This document shows, piece after piece, positions 1,750 to 47,178 of a stretch of DNA of 60,274 nucleotides. The stretch is from Gekko japonicus. Its lineage: Eukaryota. Position 1 is the first letter of the stretch. Each line of letters opens with the position of its first letter. The stretch covers positions 777,064 to 837,337 of the forward strand of contig NW_015177013.1 of the NCBI RefSeq assembly GCF_001447785.1. The letters run 5' to 3'. A program made the position numbers and the translations under genes. The notes under the pieces were generated by a model that was not told the DNA's origin, did not search any database, and was given only the letters and a program-made list of their open reading frames with translations.

Positions 1750-2485
1750 TAAAGAAATGGCAGCACCTTGGGGTGCCTGAGCTTTGGCAGCACTTCAGGG
1801 TAACTGACCTTCTAACTCTTTCTGTTAATTGTTTGAACAGGTTTTGAATGGACAGTAATGGGTGGCAAAGATCCTTAGATTTCTTTATTCTCATTTGAGG
1901 AGAGGAGGACATCCTGATGTTTGGGTACTCCACCCACAATCCCTGGAGGCAGATTATGAGGTAATCCTTTCCCACACCTGAGGAGAGGAGTACCTCCTTC
2001 TTCATTTCTTTTCCTGCCTCTTTCGCATGTGCAGGACTCCGGAGGATTGCCTTTTGGCCTTTTTTCTGCTGTGGAGTTCCCTTTTAGATAATCTTTTCTT
2101 ACTTTGTGTTTTTCTTCTCAATTGCCATTGTTGGAGGAGAGAGAAGGGGAGGGGACAATAACCCTCCTTGTTTCTCCTCCAACATCCACCTCTGCTCTGC
2201 TCAGTGACTAGTTGCCACTAGTCCCCAAGGCTCTTGGTCATCGAGTAAAACGTGCAAGAGTTTTGTGTTTTTCTGTCATTTGCATTTGAAATGACAGGCA
2301 CATTAGCAGATAATTTAGGGGTCATCATGCTGGATGACAGGGATGCAGAAGTAAAAGCAGAGGTGTAAATTGGCAGTTTCCACAGTTAAGCCAGCTGTGA
2401 GGAAATCTTTGGTGCTAAAATCCCTGCACCTTCTTGCAGCAACTGCCACTTCTTCTGCGGTACAAATGCAGACTGATCAAAAGGT

Positions 2486-2658
2486 GATTCAGGTGGGTAG
2501 CTATGTTGCACTGAAGCAATAGAACAAAGTTTGAGTCCAGTGGCACCTTTAAGACCAACAAAGTTTAATTCTGGGTATCAGCTTCTGTGTGCATACAGAC
2601 GAAAGTTTATACTCAGGATTAAACTTTGTTGGTCTTAAAGGTGCCACTGGACTCAAAC
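2486..2658. mobile_element. Penelope-derived short hairpin element
   Basis: ~49-bp inverted arms (2530-2578 / 2609-2657, gagtccagtggcacctttaagaccaacaaagttta); flanked by ctgatcaa(a/g)aggtg direct repeats (2473-2486 / 2660-2673). Confidence 0.7.
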
Positions 2659-2879
2659 GCTGATCAAGAGGTGGCGAGTGTGCACATCAATCCTGCTTCC
2701 CCGGGCCCCTCAGCTGCCAGCAGCCTGTGTTAGCTGCCACTTCCACTACAGCACAAATGCAAACTGATCAAGAAGTGGTGAGTGTGCAGGTCAGTACCCG
2801 AGCCCCTCAGGAAGAAGTGGAGATGTCTTTGTTGCCCCAGTGGGTTTTTCAGGAGTGACTGACCAACTTCTTTAATAAT

Positions 2880-5235
2880 GAGAGTTGATCAGAAGAAAGC
2901 AGTCTCAGGGCATAAAGATACATAGCTCTTTCTCATCAGCCTACATCCTGCCTAAAAGGCAGGCTACCCAAGGGGCCAAGGATTCGGATCACCAAAAATC
3001 CTCTTGGCCTACTAAATGTGGCACAAAAAAAGCTCCATTATTCTTTGTGCTTTGTTTTGAGGTAGGAACAATTGGTTGACGGAGGTGTCGATGATAACTC
3101 CCAGATATTCCAGTTGTTGAGAGGGAGATAGGGAGATCTTTTGTGGGCTGGCTATGAATCCATTATCTTGAAGGCACTGGATGGTCAACTTTGTGACTAG
3201 TTGGGTCTTGTTTCTGGTACTGGAGACCAAGCCCTATGAGGAAAGGCTGAGGGACTTGGGAGTGTTTAATCTGGAGAAGAAGAGGAGGTTTTGGGGGGGA
3301 TGTGATTGCTCTCTTTAAGTAATTGAAGGGCTGTCACTTAGAGGAGGGCAGGGAGCTGTTCCTGTTGGAAGCAGAGGATAAGACTCACAATAATGGGTTT
3401 AAATTAAATGTGGGAAAGTAGTGGCTGGATATTAGGAAAAACGTTTTTTACACTACGAGTTGTGTAACAGTGGAATCAGCTGCCTAGGGAGGTGGTGAGT
3501 AGTCTTTAACCAGTGGCTAGACAAACACTTGTCAGGGATGCTCTAGGAGGATCCTGCATTGAGCTGGGGGTTGGACTAGATGGCCCCTTTCAACTCTGTG
3601 ATTCTATGAAAATCAAGGCCAGGTTTCTGCCCAGATTCCTCTGGAAGATCAAAGATCAATGAGTGGACATTATACTAGTGACGCTATTTTGGCCATGTCG
3701 GTTCTCACAGATTTCATTAGAACCCCCCTGGATTACCAGTGTCCTCAGACATGCTACAACAGGGTCCCATTTGGCATCCCGACCCCACCTGGATGCACTT
3801 GACCACCTGGAGGATGAAAATAGGTGCTTCCTATGATTGGGATATGATCCTGTTATGACGGAGACTCTACTGGCATCCCAAAGACAATCCACCAACAAAA
3901 TACGCAATACGTCTTGGAAAGCCTTCATATGATGGTGCAGAAGAAAGGGGATTAACCCATTAAAACTATCGCTCACCTCAATTTTAGCATTCCTGCAAGG
4001 AGTCAAGAGAAAACTTAAGGCACACACACTGAAATGGCAAACAGCTGCCTTAGCTGCTGTTCTGCACCATACCAAAGGCATGCACATTTCCTGTCATCCC
4101 CACATCATCTGCTTTATTCGAGGCATGACTCTGAGGGACCACCACAAGCTCACAGATTTCTCATGTGGAAATTTCAAATCGTCCTCTCTGCTCTCACAAA
4201 CCATCATTTGAACCACTTCGGGATATCTGCATCTAATGGCTCAGAATGAAGACTCTGATCCTTGTTGCCATCACCTTGGCCAGGAGGGTGTTTGAAATAG
4301 ACTCACTTTCAGTCAAGGGAGACATTTTCATCTTCCATAAGGTCAAAATGGTCCTTAGACCTGATCCCATGTTTATTCCCAAGGTTAATTCTGTGTTCCA
4401 CAGGTCCCAGGAACTGCAACTACCATTCTGTCTGAAGCTAAGCATCCAAAGGAAAAGGCTTGGAACACTCTCGATGTTAGAAGAGCCCTAAAGTATTACT
4501 TACAGTGAACCAACTTCTTTAGAAAAACAGATGCTATGTTTATCTCCATATTTCCTCCAAACAGGGGCCATAGGATGTCCAGGGTGGCGATCAGCAACAC
4601 CATCAAGGCTTGCATCATTGAAGCCTACAAAGGCCATAATAGTCAAATTTCTTCAGGTATCACAGCTCATTCTATCCAGAGTGCTGCCACCAACATGGCC
4701 TTTGTTAAGCATGCTGCTGTCAAAGAAGTCTGTAAAGCAGCTACCTAGTCTTTGCTATCCACTTTCATCAAACTTAAAAAAAAATCAACACTAGAAGAGT
4801 GCTGCAGAACATTATAAGTGATGGTGACTCTAATCCACCCAATAATTGAAGACACTGTTCTGGGAGGTCACTATCAAGATGTCCTGCCATAGAGGAAGAA
4901 CAGACCATTGAATACTTACCATGAAGGGTCCTTCTCCTCTTGAAGTCATCATCAGGAAGACAATAAAGCAAGTTTTTCTTCTTGTCTCATCCTTTTGTTC
5001 ACTCACTTTGTATATGTATCTGCTGTTCCTCTGTTTTTTCTCCTACTGCAGAGGTAGTAGCTTAGTCTAAACTGCTGATGGAGTTGCCAAACTGGAGAGG
5101 GTGACTCCCATGAGGCTGAAGACAGGAAGCTGAAAATTAGTTCCTCCCTCCCTTGATTGGACAGTGGGAATCAAGATGTCCTCCGTTCCTCAGAAGAGAA
5201 GGACCCTTCACAGTAAGTATCCAGTGGTCTGTTTT
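2880..5235 (+). mobile_element. DIRS retrotransposon 'B': 3' part (MT end, YR, ICR, right end) plus an inverted RT/RH fragment, nested in DIRS C
   Basis: YR motifs KTLILVAITLARRV, LRPDPMFIPKVNS, ITAHSIQS, EVCKAAT. ICR ~4870-4940 is complementary to the end 5195-5235. Minus-strand 3012-3230 encodes a DIRS RT C-terminus (GFIASPQKISLSPSQQLEYLGVIID). Confidence 0.8.
3220..3609 (+). mobile_element. CR1 LINE 3' fragment
   Basis: PYEERLRDLGVFNLEK; ends ...ttcaactctgtgattctatga (CR1 tail). Confidence 0.88.
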
Positions 5236-6939
5236 GCTCCAAGAAACAGGATAGGCCACAGAAGGGGTTTATTCCCAGTCCTTTCACATCTACAGGACTC
5301 TTTCCAGATTCTGTACAGACTATAAAAAACTGACCTGGTCCAAGCTAAAGTCTTCCTTCAGGTCCAACTCTCAGTCCATCCAGGGCCCAAACTCCGGCAA
5401 CAGAGGCAACAAACCTTACCCACAGCGCTCCTGACATCAGGCCTCTACCAGTAGGGGGCAGACTTAGATTGTTCTGGCAGAAATGGACTGTATCAACATC
5501 CGATGCTTGGGTGCAACACGCCATCAGGCAAGGTTATGCCATTGAGTTGTCTCCCCGGCATGAGCCCTTCTTGCAGTCCCCTCATTCTAACTAATTTGTT
5601 GCATACAAAAAATGGTGACTCCAAAGTCAATTTCAGAGGCAATTATAGCAGGGAACTTCATGATATCCATAGACCTCAAAGAGGCCTATCTATATTTCCC
5701 AATTTTTCTCCATACAGAAGTACCTCTGCTTCACTTGGGGAAGGGATCACTACCAGTCCAAGGCCCTGTCCTTCAGACTAGCATCGGCCCTGAGGGTGTT
5801 CACAAAGGTGATGGTTGCCTCAGATCCCAGGGTATCCATGTGCATCCCTACTTGGATGACCTTTTCATCAGGTCTCTCTCAGCAGAGAAGGGGTTCGAGG
5901 ACATGCAGTCCACTATCCAGCATTTGTCATAACACTGCTTCCTCGTCAACACTGAAAAGAGTCTGTTGACCCCATCACAGGTTGTGACTCACTTGGGAGC
6001 AATTGTGGATGAAGTCTGCATGAAGCTTTTTCTCCTCCCAGAAAAAGTGGCAAAGCTAAAGAGTGCAGCAAATCTTTTCATTGCCTCAAGGTTGAAGGAC
6101 CTAATGGTTTTGACCCAGCTCCTGGGTTCCATGGTTGCAGCCATTGCCACAATCTCATAGGCTTGAGCACTCTCCAGGGACCTTCAGTGATTCTTACCTG
6201 CTCACCAGTGGTCAGTTGTCCTCAAGAGCCACTTGAGACTGAGAGTCTGTCCTCAGTTAAATATTTCCCTTTGTTGATGGACTGTCTTTTCACATCTGAT
6301 CAAAGGCAAAGAGATCCATCCAGAGATGGACCTAGTGATTATCACAAATGTAAGTCTTTTGGGCTGGGGAACCCACTGCTCTCTGGGCCAGAGCCAAGGA
6401 ACATGGTTGGTCTCAGAACAGACCGTGAGCATCAGTTTCCTGGAACTCGGCATGATTTTCCTAGTGCTAGAATTCTTCTTGAAAATGTATCGGCGCTTTC
6501 ATGTTTGCTTTTGAACTGACAACACCACAGCCAAGGCCCAAGTCAATCGCCAGGGAGGCATGTGATCCTGGAAGCTTTAACAGGAAGTGGCCTTGATAAT
6601 GAAGTGGTCAGAAAGACACCTAGCAGCTCTCCTGAGTGGAGTACATCAAAGGCATCTTCAGTATCCAAGTCGATTGGCTCAGCCAGACTCACTTGGACCA
6701 AGGGGAGTGGTCCCTGTCCCAGGCCCTATTCAAACAAGTGACTCATTGCTTTGATCAACCCTGTGTAGACCTTTTCACCTCTCCCTATAACACGGACCAC
6801 CCACTTCTTTTTTTGTTATAACTGTCCAGAAGTGGAAAAGACAAGGTCTTCTTCTCTCCAGGTGGCTGGCCGGCCTACTGTATGCCTTTCCTCCAATCCC
6901 AGTGGTCTCCAGGGCTCTGAAAAAACTTAAGCAGGAGAG

Positions 6940-7522
6940 AGAAGAAAAGAAGAAGAGATTGGATTTCTACCCCTCCCTTCACTACCTGAAGGAGTCTTAG
7001 AGTGGCTTACCTGTGAAGTAGCCAAGGAAACAAGACAAAACTGGGGCCAATATAGAACCAATAATACACTCTGAACCATGAGTAGTATGCTAGATACAAT
7101 TGCTTTATACTAGATAGTTACTATAAAGTATACAAAATTTCCCCAAATATTTACAACAATAAGAATACAATAGAATATCAGTGGCTGCCAACAGCCCCAA
7201 AATAACAGTGGAATTCCTAAACAGTTACTGTTGGCAGTCAAAAAAGTAGAAGGCTTAATGAGCTGATAGCTACTGGAGCTTGACGAAGCAGCCGGCTTAC
7301 ACTTGGTTTCGTCTAGTGACTTCCTCATAAGCAGCTTAACTGTTGTTGTATATAAGTTTTCTTAATATGTGTATTTTCTTGGTTTTTAAGATACTCCTCT
7401 AGAGATGCTACCTTTAATATAGGGACTAGCCCTTATTTCCTTGGACCATATCTCCTATGATTTCCTTGGACCAGTTCTCCCAGATTAGCGTCTGTGCTCC
7501 TAACCACTACACCAAACTGGCT
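6940..7522 (-). mobile_element. tRNA-derived SINE (Squam3-like) inserted in the DIRS C MT domain, itself interrupted by unidentified sequence ~7012-7470
   Basis: Tail gaagaagagattggatttctacccctccc at ~6945; head ...taaccactacaccaaactggc at ~7520; DIRS frame KKLKQER / AVIFLAPHWPR resumes on either side. Confidence 0.7.
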
Positions 7523-9440
7523 GCAGTGATCTTCCTGGCTCCACATTGGCCAAGGAAACCTTGATTTTCAGACCTGCTTGCATTGTCAGTCCAGCCTCCC
7601 TGGATGCTTCCAGTTCTTCCAGTCAGTCTGTCCCAGGGACCAATACTCACCAGGGCCTTACAGCTAGCATGCTCTGTATACGGGCAAAGGCTCTGGCCTC
7701 AGTTCTGCCAACAGTTGAGGGATGTCCACTATCACACCACCTACCTGTCAAGCGTTTCCTCAGAGAAGCAGCATTTTCCAGCCTGCCAGTGGTTCACTGT
7801 TTTCCTTCTTGGAAACTTCATTTGCTTCTTCAAGTACTTACCTAACCTCCATTTGAGCCACTGCAAGAGATATCACTCTTACAGCCATCACCTCTGCCAG
7901 ATGTGTCTGAGAATCGGGAGCTCTTATTTATAGCTAAAAGCCTCTACATTTTGTAGAAGGATGTGGGGGTTCTGTCTGGACCCTTTGCTCATACCAACAG
8001 TGAATTCTGTGTTCCATGGGTCTCAGGAGGTGTACCTCCCATTCTTGTATCCCAATCCATTGCACCTTAAGGAGAAGAACTGGGATACCTTGGATGTGTG
8101 AAGAGCCTTACATATGAACATCCAGTGTACAGCTTCTATCAGGAGATTAGATGTTCTGTTTGTAGCTTACCATCCTGTAACCAAGGGCAGAAAGGTGTCT
8201 AAAGTGTCTCTCAGTAGGTAGCTGAAAAGAGTGTTTTATTTTGGCTTATTCTCAAAGGCTTAAAAATCTGGAAGGAATCACGGCCCACAACCAGGAGGCC
8301 AGCCACCACAGCTGCCTTTCAGTCCAGTGGTTTTAGAGATCTGTAGAGTAGCCATCTGGGCAGCTATGTCTACCTTCATAAGCCATTACAAAATGGACTC
8401 ATATGCAGCAGCCGATGTAATCTTTGGGTGGCAAGTGCTTCAACAGGTGGTTTGAGAGGAATTGAAACACAGTGCTGCCCTCCCGTCTCAGGGGAAGTTT
8501 TGTGACATCCCAAACATCAGGATGTCGTCCTCTCCTCAAATGAGAAAGGAACTTTGGACTTACGTGAAGGTTCCTTCTATTTGAGATAGAGGACGATATC
8601 CTGGACCCACCCTGATATAGGGGAATCTGATTGCTTTCTGGATAATAGTTCTCTTGTCTCAATTATCTTAAACTCTTTTTTCACTCTTTTTTCACTGCTA
8701 CTGTCAACTGTTGAATGTTGTTTCTTCTTTGAAATGGGGTTGGCCCTCTGGCCTTGTCCTGTAGTTGTTTAATCTTCAAGTTATGTCCTGTTGGCAGCAT
8801 CAAACAATGGGTCCACTTTGTGGTTTTCTATGGAAAGCTCTGGAAGCCTCTGAACTGAAGAAGGAGGTACTCTTCTCCTTGGGGGGGTGGGGGAGGAAAT
8901 GACCTAATGTCCTGCCTCCAGGAATTGTGGGAGAAGGAGTACCCAGATGTCAGGATTTCCTTCTCTACTTGAAATAGAAGGAACTTTCACAGTAAGTCCA
9001 AAGTTCCTTTTGCAGTTATTTGACTATGATAAATGGATTTCTCTGGGATCCCTTCAACTCTGTTCTGTATGATTTGTATGAATGGCCTCCTGAAGGATAC
9101 TTGAAAATACAGTTTTAATGGCAACAAACTTTGTCATCAGGTAACTTGAAGAGCCGTATGTTTGTGTAACCAGTTTCTTCTTGTTTTGGAATAACAAAAA
9201 AGAAGTAGGAGGCTCTTTTACCTTATCAGATGGGCAGGGGCAGATTAGATCAGTGAAGTGCCAGTTACTAGTGGTACCATGTAGTCAAGTTAAACCTGTA
9301 CATTTTGGACCAGGCATGAAAATTAGTAGGTCCTTACTAGATCAAAGAGGAAAGATCACATTTACTGTCTTCTGTACACTTCTATATCTGTTCACTTCTG
9401 TGCTGATGGGTCTAGTTTACCACATTTTGAGTGTATGATG

Positions 9441-9535: not shown

Positions 9536-9716
9536 CTCTGAGACAACTTCCTCCTAAATAAACATAAGCCTTCAGTTGTTGAGAGCATCTGAGAATGTTC
9601 TGCTCAAGTTTAAGGGCAGGTATTACACTGATGTAGTCTCAGCACTAATACATTTCACATTTAAGGTCTGTCAATATATCTTTACCCTCCTTTAGAAAAG
9701 TAGTGCACACTGTTTT

Positions 9717-10112
9717 AAGAACAAAGAGAAGCCAATGTCGGATCAGGCCAATGGCCCATCCAATCCAACACTCTGTCACACAGTGGCCAAAAATACCAGG
9801 TGCCATCAGGAGGTCCAGCAGTAGGGCCAGGACACTAGAAGCCGACCCACTGTTGCCCCCTCCCTCTGCACCAAGAATACAGAGCATCACTTGACCCAGT
9901 CTGAGAGTTCCTATCTATACCCTGTGGCTAATAGTCACTGATGGACTTCTGCTCCATATGTTTATCTAATTCCCTCTTGAAGCTGTCCATGCTTGTATCC
10001 ACCGCCACCTCCTGCGGCAGTGAATTCCATGTGTTAATCACTCTTTGGGTGAAGAAGTACTTCCTTTTATCAGTTCTAACCTGACTGCTCAGCAATTTCA
10101 TTGAGTGCCCAC
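9717..10112 (-). mobile_element. CR1 LINE 3' end (host of DIRS A; continues at 15709-16037)
   Basis: Reverse complement of the CR1 copy at ~35245-35640 (GHSMKLLS..RTDKRKYFFTQRVIN plus 3' UTR). Confidence 0.9.
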
Positions 10113-10477
10113 AAGATCTTCATCGTGGTCCCTGTGCAGTCCCACACTTTGGTTTTGGCCTGCCCACGAACCCGATCTCGGAGATCTGGAAGAGCTAGCC
10201 TCAGACAATTTTTGGCGGGCTTTTCTCCTCCACTCTGGGGAGCAGGCTGCTACTGCGCATGCCTGGAGCTGAGGAGAAACCCCGCCCCCACTCAGTTTCT
10301 TCTTTTCCGCCGTCATGTTCAGACCTCGTTGCGCTTCACTCCTCTGGTTTACCTCAGCTGCCTCATTTCTTTTACCTATCGTCTTTACCGCCGTTTTTGT
10401 CGTCTTTGTCTTAAAAAAAAATCTTCATTTGTTGTTTGTGGAAATTTTCCGTCTTCTCTCCCCCCCCCCCAATCCTG

Positions 10478-12341
10478 GCGGACTCAAAGAAGAAAACCAC
10501 CTTTTTAAAAAGTGCCGGGGCTGTGGAGCGAAATTACTGTCGATGGACGGCCACTCTCTCTGCCTGTTTTGCTTAGGAGAAGGCCATCGAGTTGCTACTT
10601 GTGCTCACTGCAGTAACTTTAGTACTCAAGCCTGTAAAAATCGCGCTGCTCGCCTCCGGAGTCATCTCTTGGAGGCCTCCTTCCACCCGCAAGTGTCGCA
10701 GGTCTCAACGACTCGTGCCTCGCCGCCTCCCTCACTACCAAAGGGAGATTCGGCTCAGTCAGCTGCTACCCCTGGGCAGAAGCATAAGTCCTACAAAAAG
10801 GGAAAGTCATCCCAAAAATCAACTATCTCGACTGTCTCTGATAAAGTCAAATGTAAGTCTGAGAAGGAGGCAAAGAGATCATCGGAATTGTCTTCTGACC
10901 CTCCGAGATCGAAAAAGTCCAAACAGTCTTCCTCAGCTGACATCTCCACACCGACAGTTGCTTCGGCACTGACGGCGGTACCGGCAGGGCAGTCGGATTC
11001 ATCAGGTCTACAGTCGGAAGAGGCTCAACTTCGACCACTCAGTGCCCAGCCAGCAGACATGCATCATACTCAGGTCGTGATGATCCCTTCCCATTCGCCA
11101 TCGGCTTACAGCCAACCGCCTTCTGATCTCCTTGACTCCGAGGAGCCTCGGGATCGAACTTTTCGATATTGTGAGGACTGGTTCTCGTCGGTTGTACTTG
11201 ACTACCTCACCTCGATGTTCTCGAAATCGTTCACATGGGCCTCACTACTACTCTGGGTCTCCCTCCCACCATCAGCCAATACCCTACTGTCAACACCAAT
11301 ACTCCTCGGATTCGAGATCTCCATCACCTCGTACATATGAAAGGTGCTACTATGCCTCCAGACGACATTCTTGCTCACAATATCGATCCTCAATGACATA
11401 TCACTACTCAGAGAGTCGAGAAAGTCACCGGGATCAGGATGACCCTCAAGATACGGACCTTCTCATGACACAATGCTCGTCTCAACAGCGGCCTTAGGGG
11501 CCCTTGGACTCGCCTTCTATGCAACCTCTGGAACCTCCTATCTACATGCCAGACAAACACCTCGAGTCCCCATCGGGTTCGTCCAACTATGACTCCGAGC
11601 ACTCGGATTCGGATTGTGAAGACCCCGTACCGACCCCTCCGAATTCAGATTTGGGACAGTCAGGTTCCCTCTCGCCATCGGATAGTCCTAAATCAAGCCA
11701 AACACCCGGCACCACCTGAGCGGGAAGGCAAAAAACCTGACACCCTAGCTAGAAAATTTTACTCCCTTACCACGACCGTGTCCAAACTTCACAACTATCT
11801 GGCCTACTTCTCAGCTTACTCCTATCATCTAGCGAACCAATTCAGGCCATTACTTTTGGAATTGCCTGAACCCTTGCAGAAGATAGCCTCTGCCATTGTT
11901 GAAGAATTGGACTTGTTGTCCCATCAGCAAATCAACACCGTGCATCATGCGGTCGCATGCTCCTCCAGAGGTCTGGCCACCTCCATAGCGCTTCGCCACC
12001 ACGTGTGTCTCTGGATGGCCTCCCTCCAAGATGATGTTAAGGCTAAAATAGAGGATTTACCATTTGATGGAGAAGGTTTATTTCATTCTACCACTGATCA
12101 ATATCTCTCCTTGGTGGATGACAGCAGAAAGCATGCCAAACGCCTGGGTGTCATGTCTACCTCCTTTCCACTGAAATTTAAACCTCATACCTGGACACCG
12201 AGGCCTACCCGACGTCAACAATCTCCCCGTTCTAATGACTCCTGTAGACAGAAGAAGCCCTACTCCAGATCTTCCTTTCAATCTAAGGGCAAGAATCAAC
12301 AGCCTAAACGATCTGACACCAACACCAAACAGTCTCTTTGA
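10478..12341 (+). pseudogene. DIRS A gag (N-terminal zinc finger; LAP2alpha-like C-terminal domain), frameshifted
   Basis: FKKCRGCGAKLLSMDGHSLCLFCLGEGHRVATCAHC; Ser/Pro/Lys-rich middle; ATSIALRHH..KIEDLPFDGEGLF; split over several ORFs. Confidence 0.88.
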
Positions 12342-14220
12342 CCTCTTGATTCTTCCTGTCACCCCCGGGCCATCCACAGTAACTCCTGGATGGGGCACCA
12401 GACTTCGTCCCTTTCTCCCCGCTTGGCAACTTGTTACAACAGACTCTTGGGTCCTCACCATAATTCGCATGGGATATGCGATAGAATTTCTTCACTCGCC
12501 TCATATACCTCACTTCCGTCGTACCCCTCTGAACCGTTTTTTGAGGGCTGATGTTTCCAACCTACTTGCCAAAGGCGCTGTAGAACCCGTACCCCATTCA
12601 CAACATCGATTGGGGTTTTACTCCCGATATTTCCTGGTCCCCAAATGGACAGGAGGAAAGCGTCCCAGTATGGATCTCAGGGGCCTAAATCGCTACATCC
12701 GTCGCAGAAATTTCCGCATGATTACTCTGCAGTCCATTCTTCCACTCCTACAAGAAGGTGACTGGTTAGCGTCTTTGGATCTCCAAGACACCTACTTCCA
12801 CCTCACTATCCATCCATCGTTCCGTCAATACCTCCGCTTCACCGTCTGGTCCCACCACTATCAGTACCGGGTCATCCCCGTCGAGTTGTTGACCGCCCCG
12901 AGGATTTTTACCAAATATATGGCAGTGGTAGCGTCCGCTTTGAGACATTATGCTATTGTCGTCTTCCCATACATAGATGGCTTCTAGTGACTCCCTCCTG
13001 CGAAGATCTTCGGAGAAGTATCACCCAGACACTCCGGTACTCGCTGCCCTAGGTCTTTCAGTGAACCTCTCAAAATCTCACCTCAAACCAACCCAGTCTC
13101 TCGTTTATAGGAGCCGACATAGATAGCATCAAACAACACGCTTGCTTACCTCCGAACAGGGCTGCCATGCTTCAATCCCTGGTCAACAAGTGTCTTTCCT
13201 CCCCAAAGCAAACAGCGGTGACTCTTCAGCACCTTTTGGGACACATGGTGGCCACAATGTCTGTAGTTCCCTATGCGCGGCTGCGCATGTGTCCTCTCCA
13301 ATTATGGTTTCTCTGCCATTTTCGATCTCACATGGATCCTCCGACAGTAGCTTTCGTCATCCCTCCTGCTGTCCTGACATCTCTGCGTTGGTGGCTCAAT
13401 GACACCAATCTCTTCCTGGGAATGCCGTTTCGTCTTCCACCTCCCACCGAACTCCTGACCACGGATGTGTCAATGTGGGGTTGGGGAGCCCACTACAACA
13501 ACCTAAAGCCATGAGGCGTATGGTCCGATTCCGAGAAGACCTTACACATCAACTACCTTGAACTCACAGCAGTCTGTCTAGCACTGCAGTCCTTTCTACC
13601 CAACCTATGGGAACGCCACGTCCAGGTAGCGTCGGACAATATCGCCACAATCTATTAAATCAACAAGCAGGGGGGCACGGTCTCCATTAAACTTTGCAAA
13701 CGTGCGCGCTCTCTCTGGGCTTGGTGTATCCTCCACAGTATACACCTGACAGCAGTACATGTCCCTGGGACTTCCAAAATCCAGGCCGATGTCCTCAGAG
13801 TGGTCTCTGACCTTGACCTACCTCGCAAGCGTGTTCAACCTCTTCGGTCACCCCAAGGTGGACGCATTTGCGACCAGTTGCAATGCAAAGTGTCCAATTT
13901 TCTTCAGCCGGGGAGCTCCGACTCAGGGCTCCAAAGGGGATGCTTTCCTACACAAATGGACAGGGAAACTATTCTTCATGTTTCCCCTGTTTCCTCTGAT
14001 CTCCTGGACTCTTCAAAACATTGCCATGGACGGCACCAGCTGTATCCTAGTGATCCCATGGTGGCCTCGGCAACCCTGGTTTGCAACACTTCTTCGACTT
14101 TCTTGTGGCATCTTTTTACGCTTCCCACTAGTCCTGGATATCCTAACACAATGCGAAGGGAAGGTGCTTCACCACAACCCATCAATCTTCCGCTTGACAG
14201 CCTGGAAGATCACTCACTGA
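12342..14220 (+). pseudogene. DIRS A pol: reverse transcriptase, RNase H and Dam-like DNA N6-adenine methyltransferase, disrupted
   Basis: GFYSRYFLVPK, MDLRGLN, LDLQDTYFH, PYIDG* (decayed YLDD); TTDVSMWGWGAH, HINYLEL; EWSL, VDAFAT, GDAF, ILVIPWWPRQPWF, LTAW. Confidence 0.92.
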
Positions 14221-15208
14221 TATTCTCACCACGGCTGCAACATGTGATTCTTAATTCGGGGAAACCTTCCACACGGCGTTCTTAACACTCTAAGTGGACT
14301 CGTTTTTCCAGTTGCGCCCACAATCGCAATCTGGACCCTGCGTCTGCACCCCTTTCCATGGTGCTATCTTGTCTTCTCTCCCTCAGTGATTCCGGATTGT
14401 CATATTCATTGTTAAGAGTTCATCTCTTGGCTATTTCGGCCTTTCATAATCCTGTTGACGGCATTACCATTTTTCCTCATCGTTGGTCTAAATTGTTTTT
14501 AAGAGACATGTTGCGGCTTCACCCACCAGTTAAGCCTTTCATTCCTGCCTGGAACCTTTCACTGGTCTTATCAATGCTGATGGGAAAAAACCGTTCAAGC
14601 CACTACACCTCCTCTCCTGGAAAACGGCCTTCCTAGTGGCCTTCACTTTGGGGTGATGGGCCAGTGACATTTGTGCATTCCGTTCCGATCCACCCTATAC
14701 CATCTTTCATAAATAAAAAGTGGTCCTCAGACCGGACCCAACTTTCCTACCCAAGATCGTTTCCACTTTCCACCTTTCCCAACCATCATCATTACCGACC
14801 TTCTTCGCAAATCCAACTGATGCTGGTCACACTCTGGTTGTCCGCCGAGCCTTAGACAGGGCACGCTCGTTTCGTCAGGATGTCCAGCTGTTCATAGCCT
14901 ACAGAGCCCCACGTCAGGGCTGTAAAATTTCTTCCCAACATTTGGCTAAGTGGGTTGTTGCGGCTATCAAACTTTGTTACGAACTTGCCCGTCAACCCTT
15001 ACCTGATATGGTCCGAGCGCATTCTACTAGATCAGTGGCCGCCTCGGCCGCCTTTCTGCAAGGTGTTCCTTTGGAAGATATTTGTTCTGCGACAACGTGG
15101 TCGACTCCATCCACCTTCATGACGCATTATGCCCTTGATGTTTGTGCTCGAAGGGACGCGTTTTTTGCCTGCTCGGTTCTGAACCATCTGTCATGGGACT
15201 CCGAGTAA
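14221..15208 (+). pseudogene. DIRS A tyrosine recombinase, disrupted
   Basis: LSYSLLRVHLLAISAFH, LRPDPTFLPK, RAHSTRSVAAS (HxxR), WSTPSTFMTHY (catalytic Tyr). Confidence 0.92.
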
Positions 15209-15330
15209 CTCTCTGCTCGTACGCTGGTACATGTTTTTGCCTTAGCGGTCCCATACTTGAGTGTTGACCATTGCTGTCGTCTTTCTGCCAGCGCCCACCT
15301 CCGGTAGTGTTTTAGCTGGTTAATCACCCA

Positions 15331-15420
15331 AGTGTGGGACTGCACAGGGACCACGATGAAGATAAACAGGTTGCTTACCTGTAACTGATTATCTTCAAGT
15401 GGTCACCTGTGCAGTCACAC
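15331..15420. repeat. DIRS A internal complementary region (ICR)
   Basis: agtgtgggactgcacagggaccacgatgaagat = reverse complement of the left terminus; aaacaggttgcttacctgtaactgat... = reverse complement of the right terminus. Confidence 0.95.
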
Positions 15421-15708
15421 ACACCCGCCCAACCTTCCCCGCTGCTGGCTTTCCTTCTCTCTCTATTTGCATGGTCTTGCTAGCGGTGGCTGGAAGAAAC
15501 TGAGCGGGGGTGGGGTTTCTACTCAGCTCCAGGCACACGCAGTAGCAGCCTGCTCCCCAGAGCGGAGGAGAAAAGCCCGCCAAAAATTGTCTGAGGCTAG
15601 CTCTTCCAGATCTCCGAGATCGGGTTCGTGGGCAGGCCAAAACCCAAGTGTGTGACTGTACAGGTGACCACTCGAAGATCATCAGTTACAGGTAAGCAAC
15701 CTGTTTTT

Positions 15709-16037
15709 CTTTTTTGAGGTGTGGTTACCAGAATTGTACACAGTACTCCAAATGAGGTCGCACCATCGATTTATACAGGGGCATTATGATCCTGGCTGAT
15801 TTGTTTTCAGTTCCCTTCCTAATAGTCCCCAGCATAGTGTTGGCCTTTTTTTATTGCAGTCAACATTTTCATTGAGTTACCTACTATGACTCCAAGAGAG
15901 TCTCTGCCTGGCTCCAATGTGAATCACTTTGCACTTGGCCACATTGCACCCCATTTGCCACGTTGATGCCCACTCGCCCATCCTTGACAGATCCCTTTGG
16001 AGTGCCTCACAATCCTCCCTGGTTGTCACCACCCTGA
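15709..16037 (-). mobile_element. CR1 LINE fragment (continuation of 9717-10112)
   Basis: Reverse strand encodes PLYKSMVRPHLEYCVQFW-type RT C-terminus. Confidence 0.85.
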
Positions 16038-16730: not shown

Positions 16731-17920
16731 GAAGATCTTCGTCGTGGTCTCTGTGCAGTCCCACACATGGGCTGTGTGCCTGTGCACAACCTCGACCGGA
16801 GAAACTTCTAGAGCTTTGCCTCAGAAAGCTTTTGGCGGGCTCTCTTCCCGCCCTGGGAAGCAGGCACGTACTGCGCATACCTGGAGCGGAGGAGAGAGCT
16901 GCCTCCCACTCAGTTCTTCTTCGACCACCTATGTATTCACACCTCATTTCTGTCGCTCAGTACTTGCCTCAGCTAAGTATACATTTCTCTTTCTCTTTTT
17001 CATTCCCCATGCTGTGCTGACTTCAGAGATGCTGAAGGGTAGATTTCTTGCTGCTTTCAGTGTCTACAGTTTATGTAAAGGGAAGAGCACTTGCCCTTGC
17101 TCTAAGCTGTGGGAAGGGCTAGCTCCCATTGATGCCATGCTGAGGTATGGAGTACTTTGGAAAAGAGCAAGACTTCTTGCTGTTTACTCAGTGTTCTGAG
17201 GCTCACTGCAACAGAACTTGGGCAAAAGAGCATGGGTTTCCTACTTGGAATTGCGCTGGGCCTCAATCATCTACTGAGGCATCACATGCCATTTGAATTG
17301 CCAAAGCAAGCTTTCTGGATGGGGAGGAGGCTGTGTAATTTGTGTCAGTTACAATACTTAAGCTCAAACATGTTTCTGTCTGTGATTCCTATGAAAAAGC
17401 TTCAATTTAACTGTGTTGATAAATTATTATGAGTGTTTTAAGAGTGTGTAGACTTTAATAAGATGGTCAGTACACTCCTAAGAACAGTTTCCTGGGGTTA
17501 AGCAGGACTGAATGGACTTGAATAGGATTCTGAGTAGACCTGTTTAAGATGACTCTGCAGTGATTCAGATCTGCAGCGATTTTGGACAAGTCTCCATTGC
17601 TGAGGTTTGCAAAGAGGTGAATTGGTCCATGCTATCTACATTCATGAGGCACTACTTGATAGACAATTTCTGTGAGTGAGGCAGCTATGGGAAAAGCAGC
17701 TACAAGTGTTATTCCTCTAGGCAGCCCATGGATCTCTAGCTTCCATGGCAATGAGGGAAGGAGTGCCTCCCTCCAGTCACTTGTCGGTTTAGGCAGGAAG
17801 AGCCAGGCTGAACCAGGAAAAGCCCTTCTGGTGCTATGGAAGGTGCTAGAAGGAAAGGTTTTAAGTTCAGTCCTCTGCAGCAGGCATGTGCAGTCTCATG
17901 TGTGCCTGTAGTGACATCAG
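16731..17920 (+). mobile_element. Internally deleted DIRS remnant 'D'
   Basis: Left ITR 16731-16925 resembles that of DIRS A (atcttcgtcgtggtctctgtgcagtcccacac); decayed gag zinc finger ~17090-17230; YR C-terminus SIAEVCKEVNWSMLSTFMRHY at ~17590-17660. Confidence 0.7.
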
Positions 17921-19841: not shown

Positions 19842-20100
19842 AAGATTGGATTTATACCCCGCCCTTCACTACCCGAAGGAGTCTCAGAGCAGCTTACAAT
19901 CCCTTTCCTTTCCCCTTCCCTTACCTGTGAGGTAGGTGGGGCTGAGAGAGCTGAGAACTGCTCTTGAGAGAACAGTTCTGAAAGTACTTACGACCGACAA
20001 AAGGTCACGCCAGCAGCTGCATGTGGAGGAGTGGGGAGTCAAACCTGGTTCTCCCAGATTAGAGTCTGCGCTCTTAACCACTACACCAAACTGGCTCTCT
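19842..20100 (-). mobile_element. tRNA-derived SINE (Squam3-like), full length
   Basis: Reverse complement: gagagccagtttggtgtagtggttaagagc (A box)...ggtttgactccc (B box)...cagccccacctacctcacagg...gtataaatccaatc. Confidence 0.88.
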
Positions 20101-20982
20101 AACTATACATAGTATTAAATATATGACTTTATCAAGTATTTGTGGGGACAGTTAATGCAGAATGGAATACTGCATTTGCTTTAATACAAGGACAAGTGTG
20201 AGAACTCATGGCTGGGGGGAATCCTTTCCTTCCTCCATCCACTTGCCATGCCAACTGTTCACCTGCAGTGCCACCATCTGCCTGGCTCATGCCGCATGTG
20301 TGTGTGAGGGGGAGTCTCTACTCCCCTCATTTGCAGCACGTCCACTGGCCTGGCTCATGCAGCAGCGGTAGCAGCTTGGGTTTATGCTTCCCTCCAGCAG
20401 CACAGTTCCTGCTGCTGTCCTGCTTGCTCACTCTCCCCCTTCTCTGTCTGGTTGCCCACCTGCTACTCTGACTCCCCTCTCCACCCTATACTTATAGTAA
20501 CATTCATGGGGTGGGGGGTAAAAAGCCTCCCTCCATTCTTTTAATGTTCTTCCACAAACCAGGGTGGAGGGGTCACGACGATGCAGAAAAATATTTTTTT
20601 CTCTATACGTGGCCCCAGTTTCCAGAATTCCAGAGTCTGCAGCTTGGGGACATGTTGAGAATTAGATATAATGATTTAAATAGGTGGAATATTATGATAA
20701 TTGTGAAGAAAAACAAAAACCAAAGGAAGATCAGTTAATGCTGTTAAGTTTGAATCCTGTTCAGCAAAGTTTTAAGATATGTTAAACACATGCTTAATCC
20801 TTTACACACATCTAGGCCTAACATCGTATCTGGATACATTGTTTGTCTTCAGTGATGATCCTCAGGCTGTCTTTAAATGTGTTTTTCTTTTGTTGGTTTA
20901 CACAGTTCAATGAGAAGCAGGAACAGTTAGTTTGGTACTTGTGACATTGCTCAAGTTTTTTTCTGTTTCATGTAACTTTTAA

Positions 20983-34859: not shown

Positions 34860-36648
34860 GCCAGACAATCCTAGGATCTCCTGGCTATACCACACAGAGT
34901 GCCATATGATACGATGGAGGCAGGCAAATGTCATCTTTAAGGGGGAAAAGGAGGATCTGGGTAACTACCAATCTGTCAGCTTGACATCTATACCTGGAAA
35001 AGTTCTAGAACATATCATCAAAAAGTCAGTCCTTGAGCATTTAGAAAGGATGGCTGTGATTATTAAGAGCCAGCATGGGTTTCTCAAGAATAAGTTATGT
35101 CAGACTATGATAACCATCTTCTCAACTAGCTTGGAGAAACGACGACTGAGGGGTGACATGATTGAGGTTTATAAGATTATGCATGGGAAAGAGCAATTAG
35201 AGAAAGAGGTACTTTTCTCCCTTTCTCACAATACAAGAACCCGTGGGCACTCCATGAAATTGCTGAGCGGTCGGGTTAGAACGGATAAAAGGAAGTACTT
35301 CTTCACCCAAAGAGTGATTAACACTTGGAATTCACTGCCACAGGAAGTGGTGGCGGCTACAAGCATGGACGGCTTCAAAAGGGAATTAGATAAGCATATG
35401 GAGCAGAGGTCCATCAGTGGCTATTAGCCACAAGGTATAGATAGGGACTCTGGGGCAAGTGATGCTCTGTCATCTTGGTGCTTGGGGGGGGGTCAACAGT
35501 GGGAGGGCTTCTAATGTCCTGGCCCCACTGGTGGACCTCCTGATGGCACTGGTATTTCTGGCCACTGTGGGATACAGAGTGTTGGACTGGATGGGCCTTT
35601 GGCCTGATCCAACATTGGCATCTCTTATGTTCTTATGTTCTTATCTTTTCTTTTTTAAAGAAAGTTACTACCTTGCTGGATCAGGGGAATGCTGTAAACA
35701 TAGTTTATCTTGATTTCAGTGAGGCTTTTGATAAGGTTTCACACAGTATTCTTGTTGACAAGTTGGTAAAATGTGGTTTGGATACTATGACTGTTAGGTG
35801 GATCTGTAACTGCTTGACATATTGCACCCAAAGAGTGCTTGTTAATGGGTCCTCATCCTCTTGGAGAGGAGTAACAAGTGGAGTGCAATATGTGACCTGT
35901 TTTGTTTAACACCTTTATACATGATTTGGATGAAAGAATACAGGCAATGCAAATTAAATTTGCAGATGATACTAAATTGGGAGGGGTAGCAAATACAGTA
36001 GAGGACAGAGTCAGGATACAAGATGATCTTGACAGGCTGAAAAACTGGGCTAAAACAAATAAAATGAATTTCAGCAGGGATAAACGTAAAGTTCTGCATA
36101 TAGTAGGAAAAATCAGATGCATAATTATAGGTTGGGGGAGAGTTGTCTTGGTAGTAGTATGTGTGAAAAGGATCTAGGGGTCTTTGTAGACCATACACTG
36201 AATGTGAGTCAGCAGCATGATGCAGTAGCTAAAAAGGCGAATGCAATTTTGGGCTGTATCAACAGAAGTATAGTGTCCAAATCACGCAAAGTGATGGTAT
36301 CACTTTCCTCTGGTTAGACCTCACCTTAAGTATTGTGTTCAGTTTTGGGCACCACAATTTAAGAAGGATATAGACAAGCTGGAATATGTCCAAAGGAGAG
36401 CAACAAAGATGGTGAGGGGTCTGGAGACCATGTCCTGTGAGGAAAGATTGAAGGAGCTGGGTATGTTTAGCCTGGAGAGGAGATGACTGAGTGGTGATAT
36501 GATAACCATCTTCTCAAGTACTTGAAGGCTGTCATATAGAGGATGGTACGGAATTGTTTTCTGTTGCCCCAGAAGGTTGGACCAGAACCAGTGAATTGAA
36601 ATTAAATCAAAAGAGTTTTCGATCCCTTCCAACTCTATTATTCTATCA
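34860..36648 (+). mobile_element. CR1 LINE RT region, interrupted by a second CR1
   Basis: NYQSVSLTSIPGKVLE, QHGF, YLDFSEAFDKV, KFADDTKLGG; ends ccttccaactctattattctat. Confidence 0.92.
35126..35643 (+). mobile_element. CR1 LINE 3' end of another subfamily, nested in 34860-36648
   Basis: SLEKRRLRGDMIEVYKI...RKYFFTQRVINTWNSLP; tail (ttatgttc)n. Confidence 0.92.
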
Positions 36649-37430: not shown

Positions 37431-37693
37431 AGAAGAAGAGATTGGATTTATACCCCACACTTCACTTGGAGTCTCAGAGCGGTTTACAAAGTACTCTCCC
37501 TTCCCCTCCCCACAACAGTGAGGTCGGTGGGGCTGAGAGAGCTCTGACAGAAACTGCTCTTTCAAGAACAGCTCTGACAGAACTATGGCTTGCCCAAGGT
37601 CATCCAGCAGCTGCAAGTGGAGAAGTGGGGAATCAAACCCAGTTCTCCTAGATTAGAGTCCGTGCACTTAACCACCACACCAAACTGGCTCTC
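37431..37693 (-). mobile_element. Squam3-like SINE, full length
   Basis: Same family as 19842-20100. Confidence 0.88.
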
Positions 37694-39189
37694 AAAAACA
37701 AGAAATACAGATCCTTCTGCTTCCTTGGTGCATGAGACCTATACTTGCTGGGAGATGCATTTTAAATCCAGTGGACAAGGGGCCTGTTATATACTTTCCC
37801 CTGTTGCCGCTGATTTCCAGAGTCCTCTACCAAATGAGATAGGAACACACATTTGCCATCCTGATAGCTCTCTTTTGGCTCAGATAATTGTGGTTCCCAG
37901 TGCTACTGGTTGTGTCCCACAGTAGCTACATCCCACTCCCACAGGAATAGAGGTTCTTTCTGTGGAGCTTGTTTCCACACCCAAACATTGGCAGCCTGCA
38001 TTTAACAGCATAGCTCATTCAGTACCAACAGACAATTTCTGAACCTGTCAAAGAAGTTCTGCTTAATGCCAGAAAACCTCCTAACTGGCATTCCTGTTTG
38101 GCCAAATGGAAATGTTTCTGTACACGGGCCACAGAACAGCATTTAGATTCAGTCCACTGCCCAACAGAGAAGGTTTTTGAATCCCTCATATACCTACTCA
38201 GAGGAGGCTGTTCATCTACCTCCATTCGAATCCATCTAGCTGCTATAGCGTGTTTTGATGTTCAATTTCATGGGAAGTCCCTATTCTCTCAAAGGGAATC
38301 CAGATTTTTCCTTGAGGGGCTATGGAATCCCCCCCCCCCCGTTCAGCCTCTGATTCCTCAGTGGAGCCTCTCACTCATGCTCTCACAACTTATGGGTAAG
38401 CCTTTCAAACAAATGGCCAGTTGCCACATTCCTTTGGTCACTGTGAAAACCTTTTTTTCTGGTTGAGGTAATGTCAGCCAAATGTGTCAGCAAACTACAG
38501 GTGTTGAGACATGACCCTCCCTTCCATCTTCTGCACTTCTTAACAGTTCCTGCCCAAGGTAACTTAGGTTCTGCGTGAACCAAGACATCACTTTTGGTTT
38601 GATTATACCCTCAATCACAAGATGAGAGAGAATGAACTCTCTATTCCTTAGACATTCAAAGGGCTGTCCTCTTCTACCTCGGTAGAACAAAATCCTTTTG
38701 AAAAGATGACAACTTATTCATCGTTTCAGTAGGCTCCAACTTGGGCAAAAAACTGTCAACCCAATCCATCTCTAGATGGATAGTCACGTTCATCAGACTG
38801 TTACAAACTAGTGAGTTGACTCTCTGCTGCAACTTCATGCCCATTCTACTCGGGCACAGTCTGCATCAGCTGCTTTTTGCCATGGTCTGTCTGTTGATTC
38901 CATCTGCAAGGCTGCAGTGTGGTGGTCCTCTTGCACTTTAGCAAGACACTACCTGATTGAGATGCAGCAGTGGGAAGAGCAGTCCTACAGTCTCTGTACA
39001 ACTGAAAGCTCACACCCACCTTTCTAAGACTGGTAAATCAACTCGCTAATCTCCCATGTGGGACCGCACAGGTATCATGATGATGAAAACAAGGTTGCAC
39101 TTACCTGTAACTGTTGTTCATCAAGTGGCCACCTGCGCTGTCACACAATCCTCCCTTCTGCCCTTCTTTGAGCACTTAACATAATCTGA

Positions 39190-40765: not shown

Positions 40766-41157
40766 AACATAATCTGAGAAACTTGCCTCACTCCAATGAC
40801 GACAGAGAGGAATTGAGGGAAGGGCGTTCTTCCCCCTTTATATCATGTGGGAAACAGCATGGGGGAGGGGGATGGAGCACCTCTAGGCATTTTGAGCTTC
40901 AAAAAAATCCTTTCTGCAACAGGCTGTGTGTGTGCAGTACCCATGTGCAGCACAGATGACCACTCAAAGAACACTAGGTACAGGTAAGTGCAACCTGTTA
41001 TTTTGTATATGGGAAACTGTAAATAATTGAAATAACCAATTGACAGCATAATCTGAAAGGCTCAGTCAAGGTATTTTCCAATAGCTGTCCTAGCAGGTTT
41101 AGTTGGTGGTATACGTTATATATGTCCTCTTGTAAAAGCGGATCTCCCCTAAGCTAA

Positions 41158-42808: not shown

Positions 42809-44921
42809 TATCTCATTGGAAACAACCACTGGTTATCACTGTAACTTCTTTTTACTGAAATAGTTTGCACATTTTCTTTTAACAGTTAACTCATTCCCTT
42901 AAATATTACAGAGGCAACAATTTTGCTTTATATTAAGCTGAAGGACATACAGTGGAGTGCAGACAGGGCAAACTTAGGATCATGTAAGATTAGTTTGCTT
43001 TTGATGTGAACTCTGAAGTTGTTCTTTCAAGTTATAACTAGATTTGGAGCTCTGTGCAGGATTTATATTGAATAATAATGCACAGTATCTTGCACAGTTG
43101 TCGTCATTGTAATAAGGTCAGCTTGAAAGGAGTTTCTTTTGTCCTTCAGTCTATGCATTTATATATGACCTGTTTAAAAAGTATTATCACCCTAGACTTC
43201 TCTGGACATAATTTGTTCCTAGGGATTTTCTACAGAATGCTTATTACATGCAAGATACTTGGTTTTTCAGCTAATTTTCTCATGTTGCTTCATGCCTCAA
43301 CACTTGTAGAACCTTTTTAAAACAAAAAAACCCCCACCCTTTTTTCCAGGGTTTCAATTAACGATGATTGAGCAGTTAAAGTATGTTGCCCTGCTGACTC
43401 TGATATTTCAAGCACTGGATGGTGTTGCCAGGTGCCTGATATGAGCTGCTGTGCCTTTACAATTTTTTGTATCTATTGCACACCATGAAAGATGCAGAAA
43501 CCATTCATTTACTAAGCTAATGCATCTGTAAAGCCTTTGGCAGTAGATAGCTCCTTCCTGCAGCATATTACTTCTGGCTTCTGAATGTTAATTTCTCTTC
43601 AGAAAAAGGCACCAGAGCATAAAATGCCATCTGAAGTCATGTTGAGACCTACCTTGTCAATATAAAATCCTTTGGGCCCAAATTGACAGCCCATTTGCTA
43701 CATTAGCCTATTGGGCAAGGTAAAATCCTAATATAGGTGAAGAGCAGGGATCACAAATGCTTCTCTTCTGTTAAATACACTTGGATATATTTCCTAGAGA
43801 TATGGGAATACACAAGAACATTACTTCATAAGTGCACCTCCAAATCCTGGGGCAAAGAGTATTTGGTCTGTGCTTGAATGGACACAGACCTGATCAGTAC
43901 CTCAGGAAGGAATTTCTGGTAGCAAACACTGAAGGAGACATTACTTGAGTTTTAGCTTTTATCGAACATATAAAAATAACAGCAGGAAAACATAGGTAGA
44001 TTGAAAGAGCAATGCAGAATACCAAGTTTGGGGAATTACTGAGCTACTAGTAATTAGATGGCATATAAAATCATATTAGAATATAGGGAATAAACAATAA
44101 TGAGGAAATCTGATGACTTGTAGTGGGAGCCATCCCATTTAAGCAGTGATACTCAGTGGCTCAGGATCCATGTGTGGCTCTTTCACATGCCACCTGTGAT
44201 TCTTCCAAACACTGTAGTGAAAATTCCCAGACTCTTTAGCCTTTCCTCATAGAAAAGGTGCTCAAACCCCTTAATCATCTTGATTGGTTTTTTCCAGAAC
44301 TGCGCACAGTATTCCAAATGAGGCTGCACTAGAGATCTATACAGGGGCACTGCAATATTTGCAATTTTATCTTCAGTCCCTTCCCTAGTAATCCCCGGCA
44401 TGTAGATTGCAAGCAGCAGCACAATGGGTTAACATTTTCATTAAGATACCCACTACAACCCCAAGATCTGTTTCTCCCTCTGTTTCAGCAAGTTCAGATC
44501 CTATTGGCATTTATTTTTTCAATATTTACTTTCTCAGTGAATTCCAAAAGACTGGTTGGGCAGGACTTCTCTTTGCAGAAGTCATTTTGATTTCTCTTCA
44601 GTGTTTGTGTGTGTATATATGTGTGTGTGTGTGCACACGCTTGTTTGTCTTGATGATGTTATCCGTTGGCTCCTCAGGTTCTCTCTTTGCCTATTAACTT
44701 ATACTTTTTTGCCAGACCCTGCACTCCCCTCTGTTTACATCATTTGGGCAGATCTTCAACTTTTTAAAAGAAGCCTCCTTACTTTTTATAGCTTCCTTGA
44801 CTTGTGTTGTTAACCACGTAGGCATTCTTTTAGACCTTACCTAAACTGGGGTGGGGGGGTGCATTGTATCTGGGCCTCAAGCAGTGCAGTTTTAGATAGC
44901 TTCCAAGTATCCTTGGAAGCT

Positions 44922-45329: not shown

Positions 45330-45533
45330 TACAAGAACTTGCTATATACTGAATAAGACCATTGGTCCATCACAGTCAGTATAGTCTACTCAGAGTGGCA
45401 GTGGATCTCCAGGGTCTCTGGCAAAGGTCTTTCACATCACCTATTACCTGGTCCTTTCAATCTGCAGATGCCAGGAATGTAAACTGGGGTCTTCTGCATA
45501 CCAAGCAGATGCTCTGCCATTGAGCTGTGGCCC
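45330..45533 (-). mobile_element. tRNA-derived SINE (Squam2-like)
   Basis: Reverse complement ggggccacagctcaatggcagagcatctgcttggtatgcagaag...; a related copy lies at ~58595-58790 (+). Confidence 0.7.
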
Positions 45534-46667: not shown

Positions 46668-47178
46668 TAAGAACATAAGCCCTGCCAGATGAGACCAGGG
46701 GTCCATCTAGCCCAGCATCCTTTCTCACACAGTGGCCAACCAGTTCTTGTAGCGGTCCTAACAACAGGGCATAGATGCTGAGGTCTCCTGCTGATGTTGC
46801 TTCCTGGCACTGGTATTCAGAGGTTTACTGCCTTTGAACGTGGTTATCTTCCATCGCCATGGCTAGTAGACACTGATGGACTTATTTTCCATGAATCTGT
46901 CTAATTCCCTTATAAAGCTGCCTGTGCCTGTGGCCATCACTACATCCTCTGGCAGTGAATTCTACGTTTTAATCATGTGTTGTGTAAAGAGATATTTCTT
47001 TTTGTTTGTCCTGAGTCTGCTGCCCATCAGCTTCATTGGATGTCCTCAGGTTCTAGTATTTTGAGAAAGGGAGAAAAAGTTCCCTTTGTCAGCTCTTTCC
47101 ATCCTGTGTGTAATTTTATAAACCTATGCCATGTTCCCTCTTAGTCATTTCTTTTCTACACTGAAAAGCCCCAGACCA
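46668..47178 (-). mobile_element. CR1 3' end nested in the long CR1
   Basis: taagaacataag tail; reverse strand encodes the ..KRKYLFTQH..NSLPEDVVMA-type C-terminus. Confidence 0.8.

Follow-up and report, generated by a model that had tools for sequence, protein, structure and literature searches.

A candidate U1 snRNP site at the right end of DIRS1-like retrotransposons

At the right end of DIRS1-like retrotransposons, we found a short sense-strand motif whose cross-lineage consensus is complementary to the 5′ end of U1 at every base. The same element, G/GTAAGTAT or the variant GTAGGT (the slash stands before the GT), recurs in about 16 deep lineages, in the sense orientation and at the place where the right terminus templated by the ICR begins. 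Judging from the sequence, the likeliest reading, which we consider somewhat probable, is that the motif is an RNA-level U1 snRNP site, that is, a 5′ splice site, on sense read-through transcripts. The analysis covered the window, meaning the whole stretch of 60,274 nt of Gekko japonicus DNA in which elements A, B, C, and E are located, together with DIRS-like loci from metagenome contigs and RNA-seq reads of the same species.

Results

DIRS elements in the window

Element A (10116-15710, plus strand) was delimited by its ITR pair, by complementarity to its ICR, and by the loose ends of the flanking repeat. It has the makeup of a DIRS1-like element, with ITRs, an ICR, an RT, and a tyrosine recombinase. 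The left ITR (10116-10302, plus strand, without a left extension) is paired with the right ITR (15493-15680, plus strand), and the two are 93% complementary in inverted alignment (10115-10302 versus 15680-15493). The right ITR is followed by a right extension (rE) of 28 nt (15681-15708, plus strand), which pairs with the ICR only. The ICR itself (about 15330-15425, plus strand) is complementary to both termini, and its reverse complement reads as the right end followed directly by the left start. This layout is the circle junction of the classical DIRS model; a model of the DIRS circle and ICR is said to go back to Cappello in 1985. The coding part comprises an RT ORF fragment (12235-12987, plus strand; Pfam RVT_1, 3e-08) and, as the last ORF, the C-terminal part of a tyrosine recombinase (14720-15208, plus strand), which aligns to the Phage_integrase ORF of the metagenomic locus L053 (33% identity, E 6e-12); the ORFs of A are interrupted by stops. 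With its ITRs, its two-terminus ICR, and its 28-nt rE, A is close to AcDIRS1/2 of Anolis, in which the rE measures 26/28 nt (Piednoel et al. 2011, PMC3266345).

The right end of A was placed at ~15706-15710 on the basis of ICR complementarity and the loose ends of reads. In reads from other copies of a high-copy repeat, the match stops at 10120 and resumes at 15711, and these breaks fix the borders of A. Putative crossover microhomology is present at both joints (ATCTT at 10116-10120 and TTCTT at 15707-15711), and a target-site duplication test, made on this one copy, sets ATCTT on the left against TTCTT on the right. The flanks of A (9716-10120 and 15711-15835) are pieces of this very high-copy repeat, with an RNA-seq depth in the thousands, and more pieces lie at 35235-35635 (inverted), 44291-44401, and 46860-47146. 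Because the reads of other copies continue differently at 10120/15711, the two flanks are not contiguous in the repeat, which reflects either a deletion or two separate repeat fragments. A longer element A, drawn from the extension of repeat I5 to 15720, was rejected as a chance extension in the TCTT-rich flank.

Element E (32422 to about 40999, plus strand; ICR 39047-39147) belongs to the A family. Element C (~1890-9010, plus strand; ICR 8545-8582) contains a nested B-type fragment, element B, which is 5′-truncated (~4076-5233, plus strand; ICR about 4866-4936; right end 5233) and whose own left end is not present in the window. Amino-acid identity between the A/E and B/C families is about 30-50%. 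A further, truncated DIRS was observed 1 kb downstream of A, with an A-like left ITR (16732-16990, 77% to A) and a 151-aa ORF (16744-17199) and without an ICR or right end. Several tRNA-derived SINE-like repeats are scattered in the window (e.g., 20010-20102 and 37604-37696), and a tRNA-like Rfam match lies at 45471-45526 (minus strand, 35 bits). A ribozyme at the element 3′ end was discarded as a candidate, the Rfam scan of the window having given only a tRNA.

A splice-donor-like motif at right ends and in ICRs

The preliminary description had reported GTAAG just inside the terminus of every DIRS element with an intact right end, and all four intact right ends in the window indeed carry it, with the GT 15-21 nt inside the terminus. 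On the plus strand, the motif reads CAG/GTAAGCAA in A (15689-15699, GT at 15692-15693), CAG/GTAAGTGC in E (40981-40991, GT at 40984), ACA/GTAAGTAT in B (5210-5220, GT at 5213), and ACA/GTAAGTCC in C (8989-8999, GT at 8992, right end 9010); the core hexamers stand as CAG/GTAAGC, CAG/GTAAGT, CA/GTAAGT, and CA/GTAAGT, respectively. The sites of A and E have the GT and the extended U1 complementarity of a 5′ splice site, matching the U1 complement at 9/11 positions each, and by match to CAGGTAAGTAT they rank among the best 0.3% of all 6402 GT sites in the window. The four elements had been presented as four different carriers. All four do carry the motif, but A/E and B/C are two deep families, and the four ends therefore amount to two independent cases.

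As had also been claimed, every ICR in the window carries the motif complement. By ICR complementarity, the minus-strand copies were located at 15371-15381 in A, at 39097-39107 in E, at 4912-4922 in B (ATG/GTAAGTAT, 9/11 match), and at 8556-8566 in C (CAC/GTAAGTCC, with the CpG kept). The right end of B (CACA/GTAAGT) and its ICR copy (CATG/GTAAGT) had been read as alternative products of CpG decay, which is plausible, since the ICR copy of C retains the CG (CAC-GTAAGT).

Five of the window's 20 best U1-complementary GT sites (at least 9/11) are antisense and lie in or adjoining DIRS sequence: at 15002 in A, at 7841, 7650, and 6197 in C, and at 5334 between the right end of B and the coding part of C. 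These antisense sites may be due to chance.

The motif in metagenomic DIRS-like loci

By alignment of RT fragments, 80 DIRS-like loci were fetched from metagenome contigs; their RTs are 33-50% identical to that of A. The RT search for A-like elements also matched Pleurodeles and Gadus, and no DIRS relatives were found among viral contigs. ICRs were located without reference to the motif, either as inverted pairs formed with the right end or as hairpins at a distance of 2.2-3.5 kb beyond the RT match; the arms of an ICR mirror the ends of the two ITRs, which makes the ICR itself a hairpin. The metagenomic loci yielded 28 candidate ICR junctions, some of them surely false.

GGTAAGT was found in the sense orientation at 9 of the 28 junctions and GTAAGTAT at 8, compared with 0.17 and 0.02 expected from element bodies, and neither was found in antisense. 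The preliminary description had made its proposal depend on enrichment of the motif across DIRS families, and at these junctions the motif is enriched. Furthermore, the sense strand shows the motif complement most often at 2.5-2.75 kb beyond the RT match, which is the location of the ICR. The motif also stands at the true right ends of L011, L017, and L053, and that of L011 (TTACAG/GTAAGT) is like those of A and E. L053 is an intact element, in which ORF1, RT/RNase H, and the Phage_integrase ORF are followed by the ICR and the right end. Five further loci have the variant G/GTAGGT, whose +4 G can still wobble-pair with U1.

The carriers are scattered over deep branches of the RT tree, at 0.3-1.4 substitutions per site. 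The lineages without the motif are the L066/68/70/74/80 clade, L037, L065, and L003; L037 is the sister of the carrier L062, indicating that the motif can be lost. Some additional sequence features were observed in these loci. In one family (L041 81-720 and L047 81-717), four sense GGTAAGT copies lie in the first 720 nt, the 5′ leader. When the loci are taken together, the region 2.75-3.25 kb upstream of the RT end is likewise somewhat rich in sense GGTA[AG]GT. At the junctions of L046, L062, L063, L005, and L058, the motif is followed 10-20 nt downstream by a TATA-like CTTATAAA or TTCATAAAA.

Extent of conservation and complementarity to U1

Sixteen lineages were anchored at the GT, and bases were counted per position over 36 nt around the motif. 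In these counts, conservation is confined to positions -1 to +8, and the flanking bases are not conserved. Positions -1 to +5 had served to pick the sites, and the positions that were left free are T in 14/16 lineages at +6, A in 13/16 at +7, and T in 12/16 at +8. From -3 to +8, the consensus reads CAG/GTAAGTAT and is complementary to U1 nt 1-11 (5′ end AUACUUACCUG) without a mismatch, and conservation ends at +8, where U1 ends. The likeness to a U1 site that had been seen at the window ends thus holds for the whole conserved block. Even distant algae share this U1 5′ end (PMC3033335). Sites of an element's own fast-evolving proteins would drift, suggesting that the motif is read by an invariant host RNA rather than by element proteins.

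Position of the motif and structure of the termini

The motif is located where ITR-ITR complementarity yields to sequence matched by the ICR alone. The distance from the GT to the terminus is 15-21 nt in the window elements and L011 and 43-54 nt in L017, L053, L062, and L072. In the left ITR, the counterpart of the motif is broken in L017, L022/L053, L024, L039, L063, and L064, at +2, at +5, or by an indel (GGTTAAG, GGGAAG, GGTAAT, GGTAAC, or a 5-nt gap), with pairing retained in the adjacent arm bases; both ITRs of L062 and L046 have the motif intact. The reverse complement of the ICR has an intact motif in every lineage. Between ICR and right end, mismatches counted by eye in old copies amount to about 25/156 upstream of the GT and about 4/93 downstream, and the few mismatches after the GT fit a part that is re-copied from the ICR in each cycle.

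A small hairpin in the rE of A (ACAGGT..ACCTGT) includes the GT of the motif (MFE -6.7, z -2.7). The rE hairpins of C (z -4.4) and L017 (z -3.9) also stand out, and those of E, B, L011, and L053 are weak. Their registers differ: A, E, L011, and L017 have the motif in the stem, and B and C have it in the loop. In addition, the motif can pair with the ICR of the same RNA over about 60 nt, and this pairing together with the local hairpin would hide it from U1.

Neither AATAAA nor ATTAAA was found from the ICR to the motif and on to +150 in 6/7 elements, nor from the ICR to the motif in A. The canonical poly(A) signal that suppression of polyadenylation by U1 would act upon is thus missing near the site in those six elements, as far as canonical signals go; the weight of this absence is small because absence by chance is likely. 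A crude simple pattern scan detected no Sm site upstream of the donor in the seven elements.

RNA-seq reads and candidate acceptors

Reads from three raw RNA-seq runs of this species, together with one contig set, were mapped on 10000-15900 with at least 88% likeness. The depth inside A was 0-6 reads, and the ICR and right terminus of A gathered about 150-340 reads in both orientations, likewise in the contig set. The read depth at 15340-15415 and 15650-15710 was 50-100 times that of the rest of A; by this far higher depth, the ICR/terminus segment of ~75 nt is the best conserved or most abundant part of the family in this genome.

At the interior depth of 0-6 reads, no splice joint leaving 15691/15692 was detected in the three runs, no loose ends at 15691/15692 were among those listed, and no pile of RNA ends was listed there in these libraries, which are not of the 3′-end type. 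The data have little power for sense RNA, and sense splicing at G/GT is neither excluded nor demonstrated by them; the specific uses put forward in the preliminary description, a TER1-like RNA end and splicing to host acceptors, find no support in them. Splicing of antisense RNA through the ICR, a third proposed use, was rejected: no skip joint across the ICR was seen in the three runs at a depth of ~300 reads, and such splicing is unlikely in these samples. In one run, three reads contained a joint that goes back from 15672 to 10120, with a 40-nt variant rE and unspliced TTACAGGTAAGT. These reads stem either from the transcript of a circle or tandem junction or, in antisense, from the ICR of some diverged copy.

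The left ends of A, E, and B contain a pyrimidine tract with CAG at 15-24 nt from the start. Downstream of the motif, no conserved acceptor or pyrimidine tract was found in 18 junctions (mean shuffle fraction 0.44), and in the search for a branch point, pyrimidine tract, and acceptor, the best junction acceptor was no better than shuffles. A junction mini-intron or back-splice was therefore rejected, the acceptors of the 18 junctions being like shuffles and no joint going back from 15691 to ~10141. A tRNA-type primer-binding site (TGG...) was rejected because position -2 is T in just 7/16 lineages, and U1 as a primer because its complementary part is the capped 5′ end and not the 3′ end.

Discussion

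Because the right-end motif matches U1, DIRS RNA probably comes into contact with the splicing machinery at its 3′ edge. Sense transcripts would run through the right ITR, which is without a canonical poly(A) signal here, and U1 snRNP would bind this read-through RNA at the edge of the element. In the course of events that we prefer, the RNA would be cut at G/GT and joined to a downstream acceptor and poly(A) site; the replicative RNA would then be without its last 15-54 nt, and the ICR would restore them. Taken on its own, true 5′ splice site use on read-through RNA is a tentative proposal that we hold to be rather doubtful, and binding of U1 without splicing, for example, with suppression of nearby cleavage and polyadenylation, is unlikely. 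It is also conceivable, although we lean clearly against it, that the host spliceosome is part of DIRS replication, with U1-defined cleavage at G/GT making the 3′ end of the replicative RNA and the ICR re-templating the removed bases. The replicative RNA would then be a 5′ exon, left free or joined to an exon borrowed from downstream, and a freed 3′ end could anneal to the ICR and prime cDNA synthesis.

Several observations count against a U1 site. The motif-bearing reads joining 15672 to 10120 keep GTAAGT unspliced, neither a splice joint in the three runs nor a conserved acceptor in the 18 junctions was found, ICR pairing and hairpins compete for the motif, some lineages are without it, and L062 and L046 have it symmetrically. 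Furthermore, a splice junction downstream of the ORFs exposes an RNA to NMD.

Selection might instead act on the ICR copy in antisense RNA, with the right-end copy as a by-product of ICR templating; transcripts from a mirrored right-ITR promoter would then reach the motif after about 100-250 nt, and it would serve there as a U1 site or donor close to the promoter. Dictyostelium DIRS-1 has antisense transcripts from its right LTR, A has a GC-box/initiator-like ITR end ~120 nt from the ICR motif on the antisense strand, and the intact ICR copy in every lineage would fit as well. However, the ICR skip joint is missing at ~300 reads, the junction "intron" would measure only 34-43 nt in the window elements, a conserved acceptor is absent, and stabilised antisense RNA has no obvious benefit for the element, which together make such selection quite unlikely. 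If only a terminal RNA or DNA hairpin in the rE mattered, for example, for self-priming, GTAAG would be just a part of the stem or loop. Poulter and Goodwin reportedly proposed a self-priming hairpin for DIRS-1. PMC7192593 cites a 3′-terminal hairpin in the mRNA of DIRS-1, and A, C, and L017 have rE hairpins with the z-scores given above; nevertheless, the stems vary in sequence and register, the scores in E, B, L011, and L053 are weak, and structure-only selection predicts covariation rather than the fixed 9-mer observed, so we judge this explanation very improbable.

A different possibility is that the motif is a DNA or cDNA signal read by element proteins, such as an accessory recombinase site, a start or stop mark for ICR-templated synthesis, or a minus-strand priming site, and that its likeness to a splice donor is coincidental. 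At the boundary between the conserved part of the ITR and the divergent ITR plus rE, both ITRs and both ICRs keep a common stretch of at least 10 nt, with a suggested role in circle formation (PMC3266345), and the motif lies at this boundary. The ICR of DIRS is essential for retrotransposition, and the primer of the minus strand is stated to be not known (PMC7192593); the symmetric copies of L062 and L046 and the lack of spliced reads are likewise in keeping with a protein-read signal. The published conservation is within elements, with splicing unmentioned, whereas here the same sequence recurs across deep lineages and is the U1 complement. On the other hand, protein-read sites normally co-evolve and drift, but 9-11 nt are kept here over the divergence of the carriers, conservation stops exactly at the end of U1, the left copy is often broken, and the motif was lost in some lineages, including the sister of L062. 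A recombinase core site, moreover, has fixed short spacing and symmetry, in contrast with a distance to the crossover of 15-54 nt, unconserved flanks, and a frequently broken left copy. These features weaken the recombinase binding site that the preliminary description had offered, and a coincidental likeness in a protein-read signal seems to us unlikely. A chance sequence or a neutral relic shared by descent, without function, would accord with the lineages that are without the motif and with the window ends being two independent families; it is extremely hard to reconcile with an enrichment of more than 50-fold over background, strict orientation and position, and retention of the motif while all flanking bases diverged.

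Known systems offer partial parallels to the favoured U1 site. In S. pombe TER1, the 3′ end is made by spliceosomal first-step cleavage, with a defined branch point, an acceptor, and an upstream Sm site. As in TER1, the 3′ end of a functional RNA that is not mRNA-like could be set by a 5′ splice site at its 3′ edge; unlike in TER1, no conserved acceptor was found in the 18 DIRS junctions, no Sm-like site in the seven elements, and no pile of RNA ends among those listed for the three runs. U1 sites also control polyadenylation, as in the HIV-1 major splice donor acting on the 5′ LTR poly(A) site, the BPV-1 late 3′UTR element, and U1 telescripting. What these cases share with DIRS is an unusually long U1 complementarity (up to 11 nt) that lies close to the 3′ end of a long, unspliced RNA derived from the element, but no canonical poly(A) signal was found adjoining the DIRS motif, and for DIRS the likeness is one of sequence. 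Self-cleaving ribozymes trim retroelement RNA, as with the HDV-like ribozyme of R2 and the hammerheads of Penelope-like elements and retrozymes. There, too, the element has no end-forming signal of its own and has to release its RNA from a longer transcript; in DIRS, by contrast, the cutter would be the host spliceosome, and the window contains no ribozyme by Rfam.

A right-end U1 or splice-donor motif of DIRS is not described in the full-text literature searched, a scope outside which the main DIRS reviews lie. For annotation, sense intronic DIRS copies carry a near-perfect donor at their edge and can create chimeric host transcripts. The 3′ end of DIRS RNA, the RT primer, and the extent of the ICR have been open questions since 1985, and priming by a freed 3′ end via the ICR, if true, would answer that of the primer. 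A signal complementary to a host RNA across distant DIRS lineages gives these questions a concrete, testable handle, and the motif would be the first cis-element of this transposon order to be tied to a host machine.
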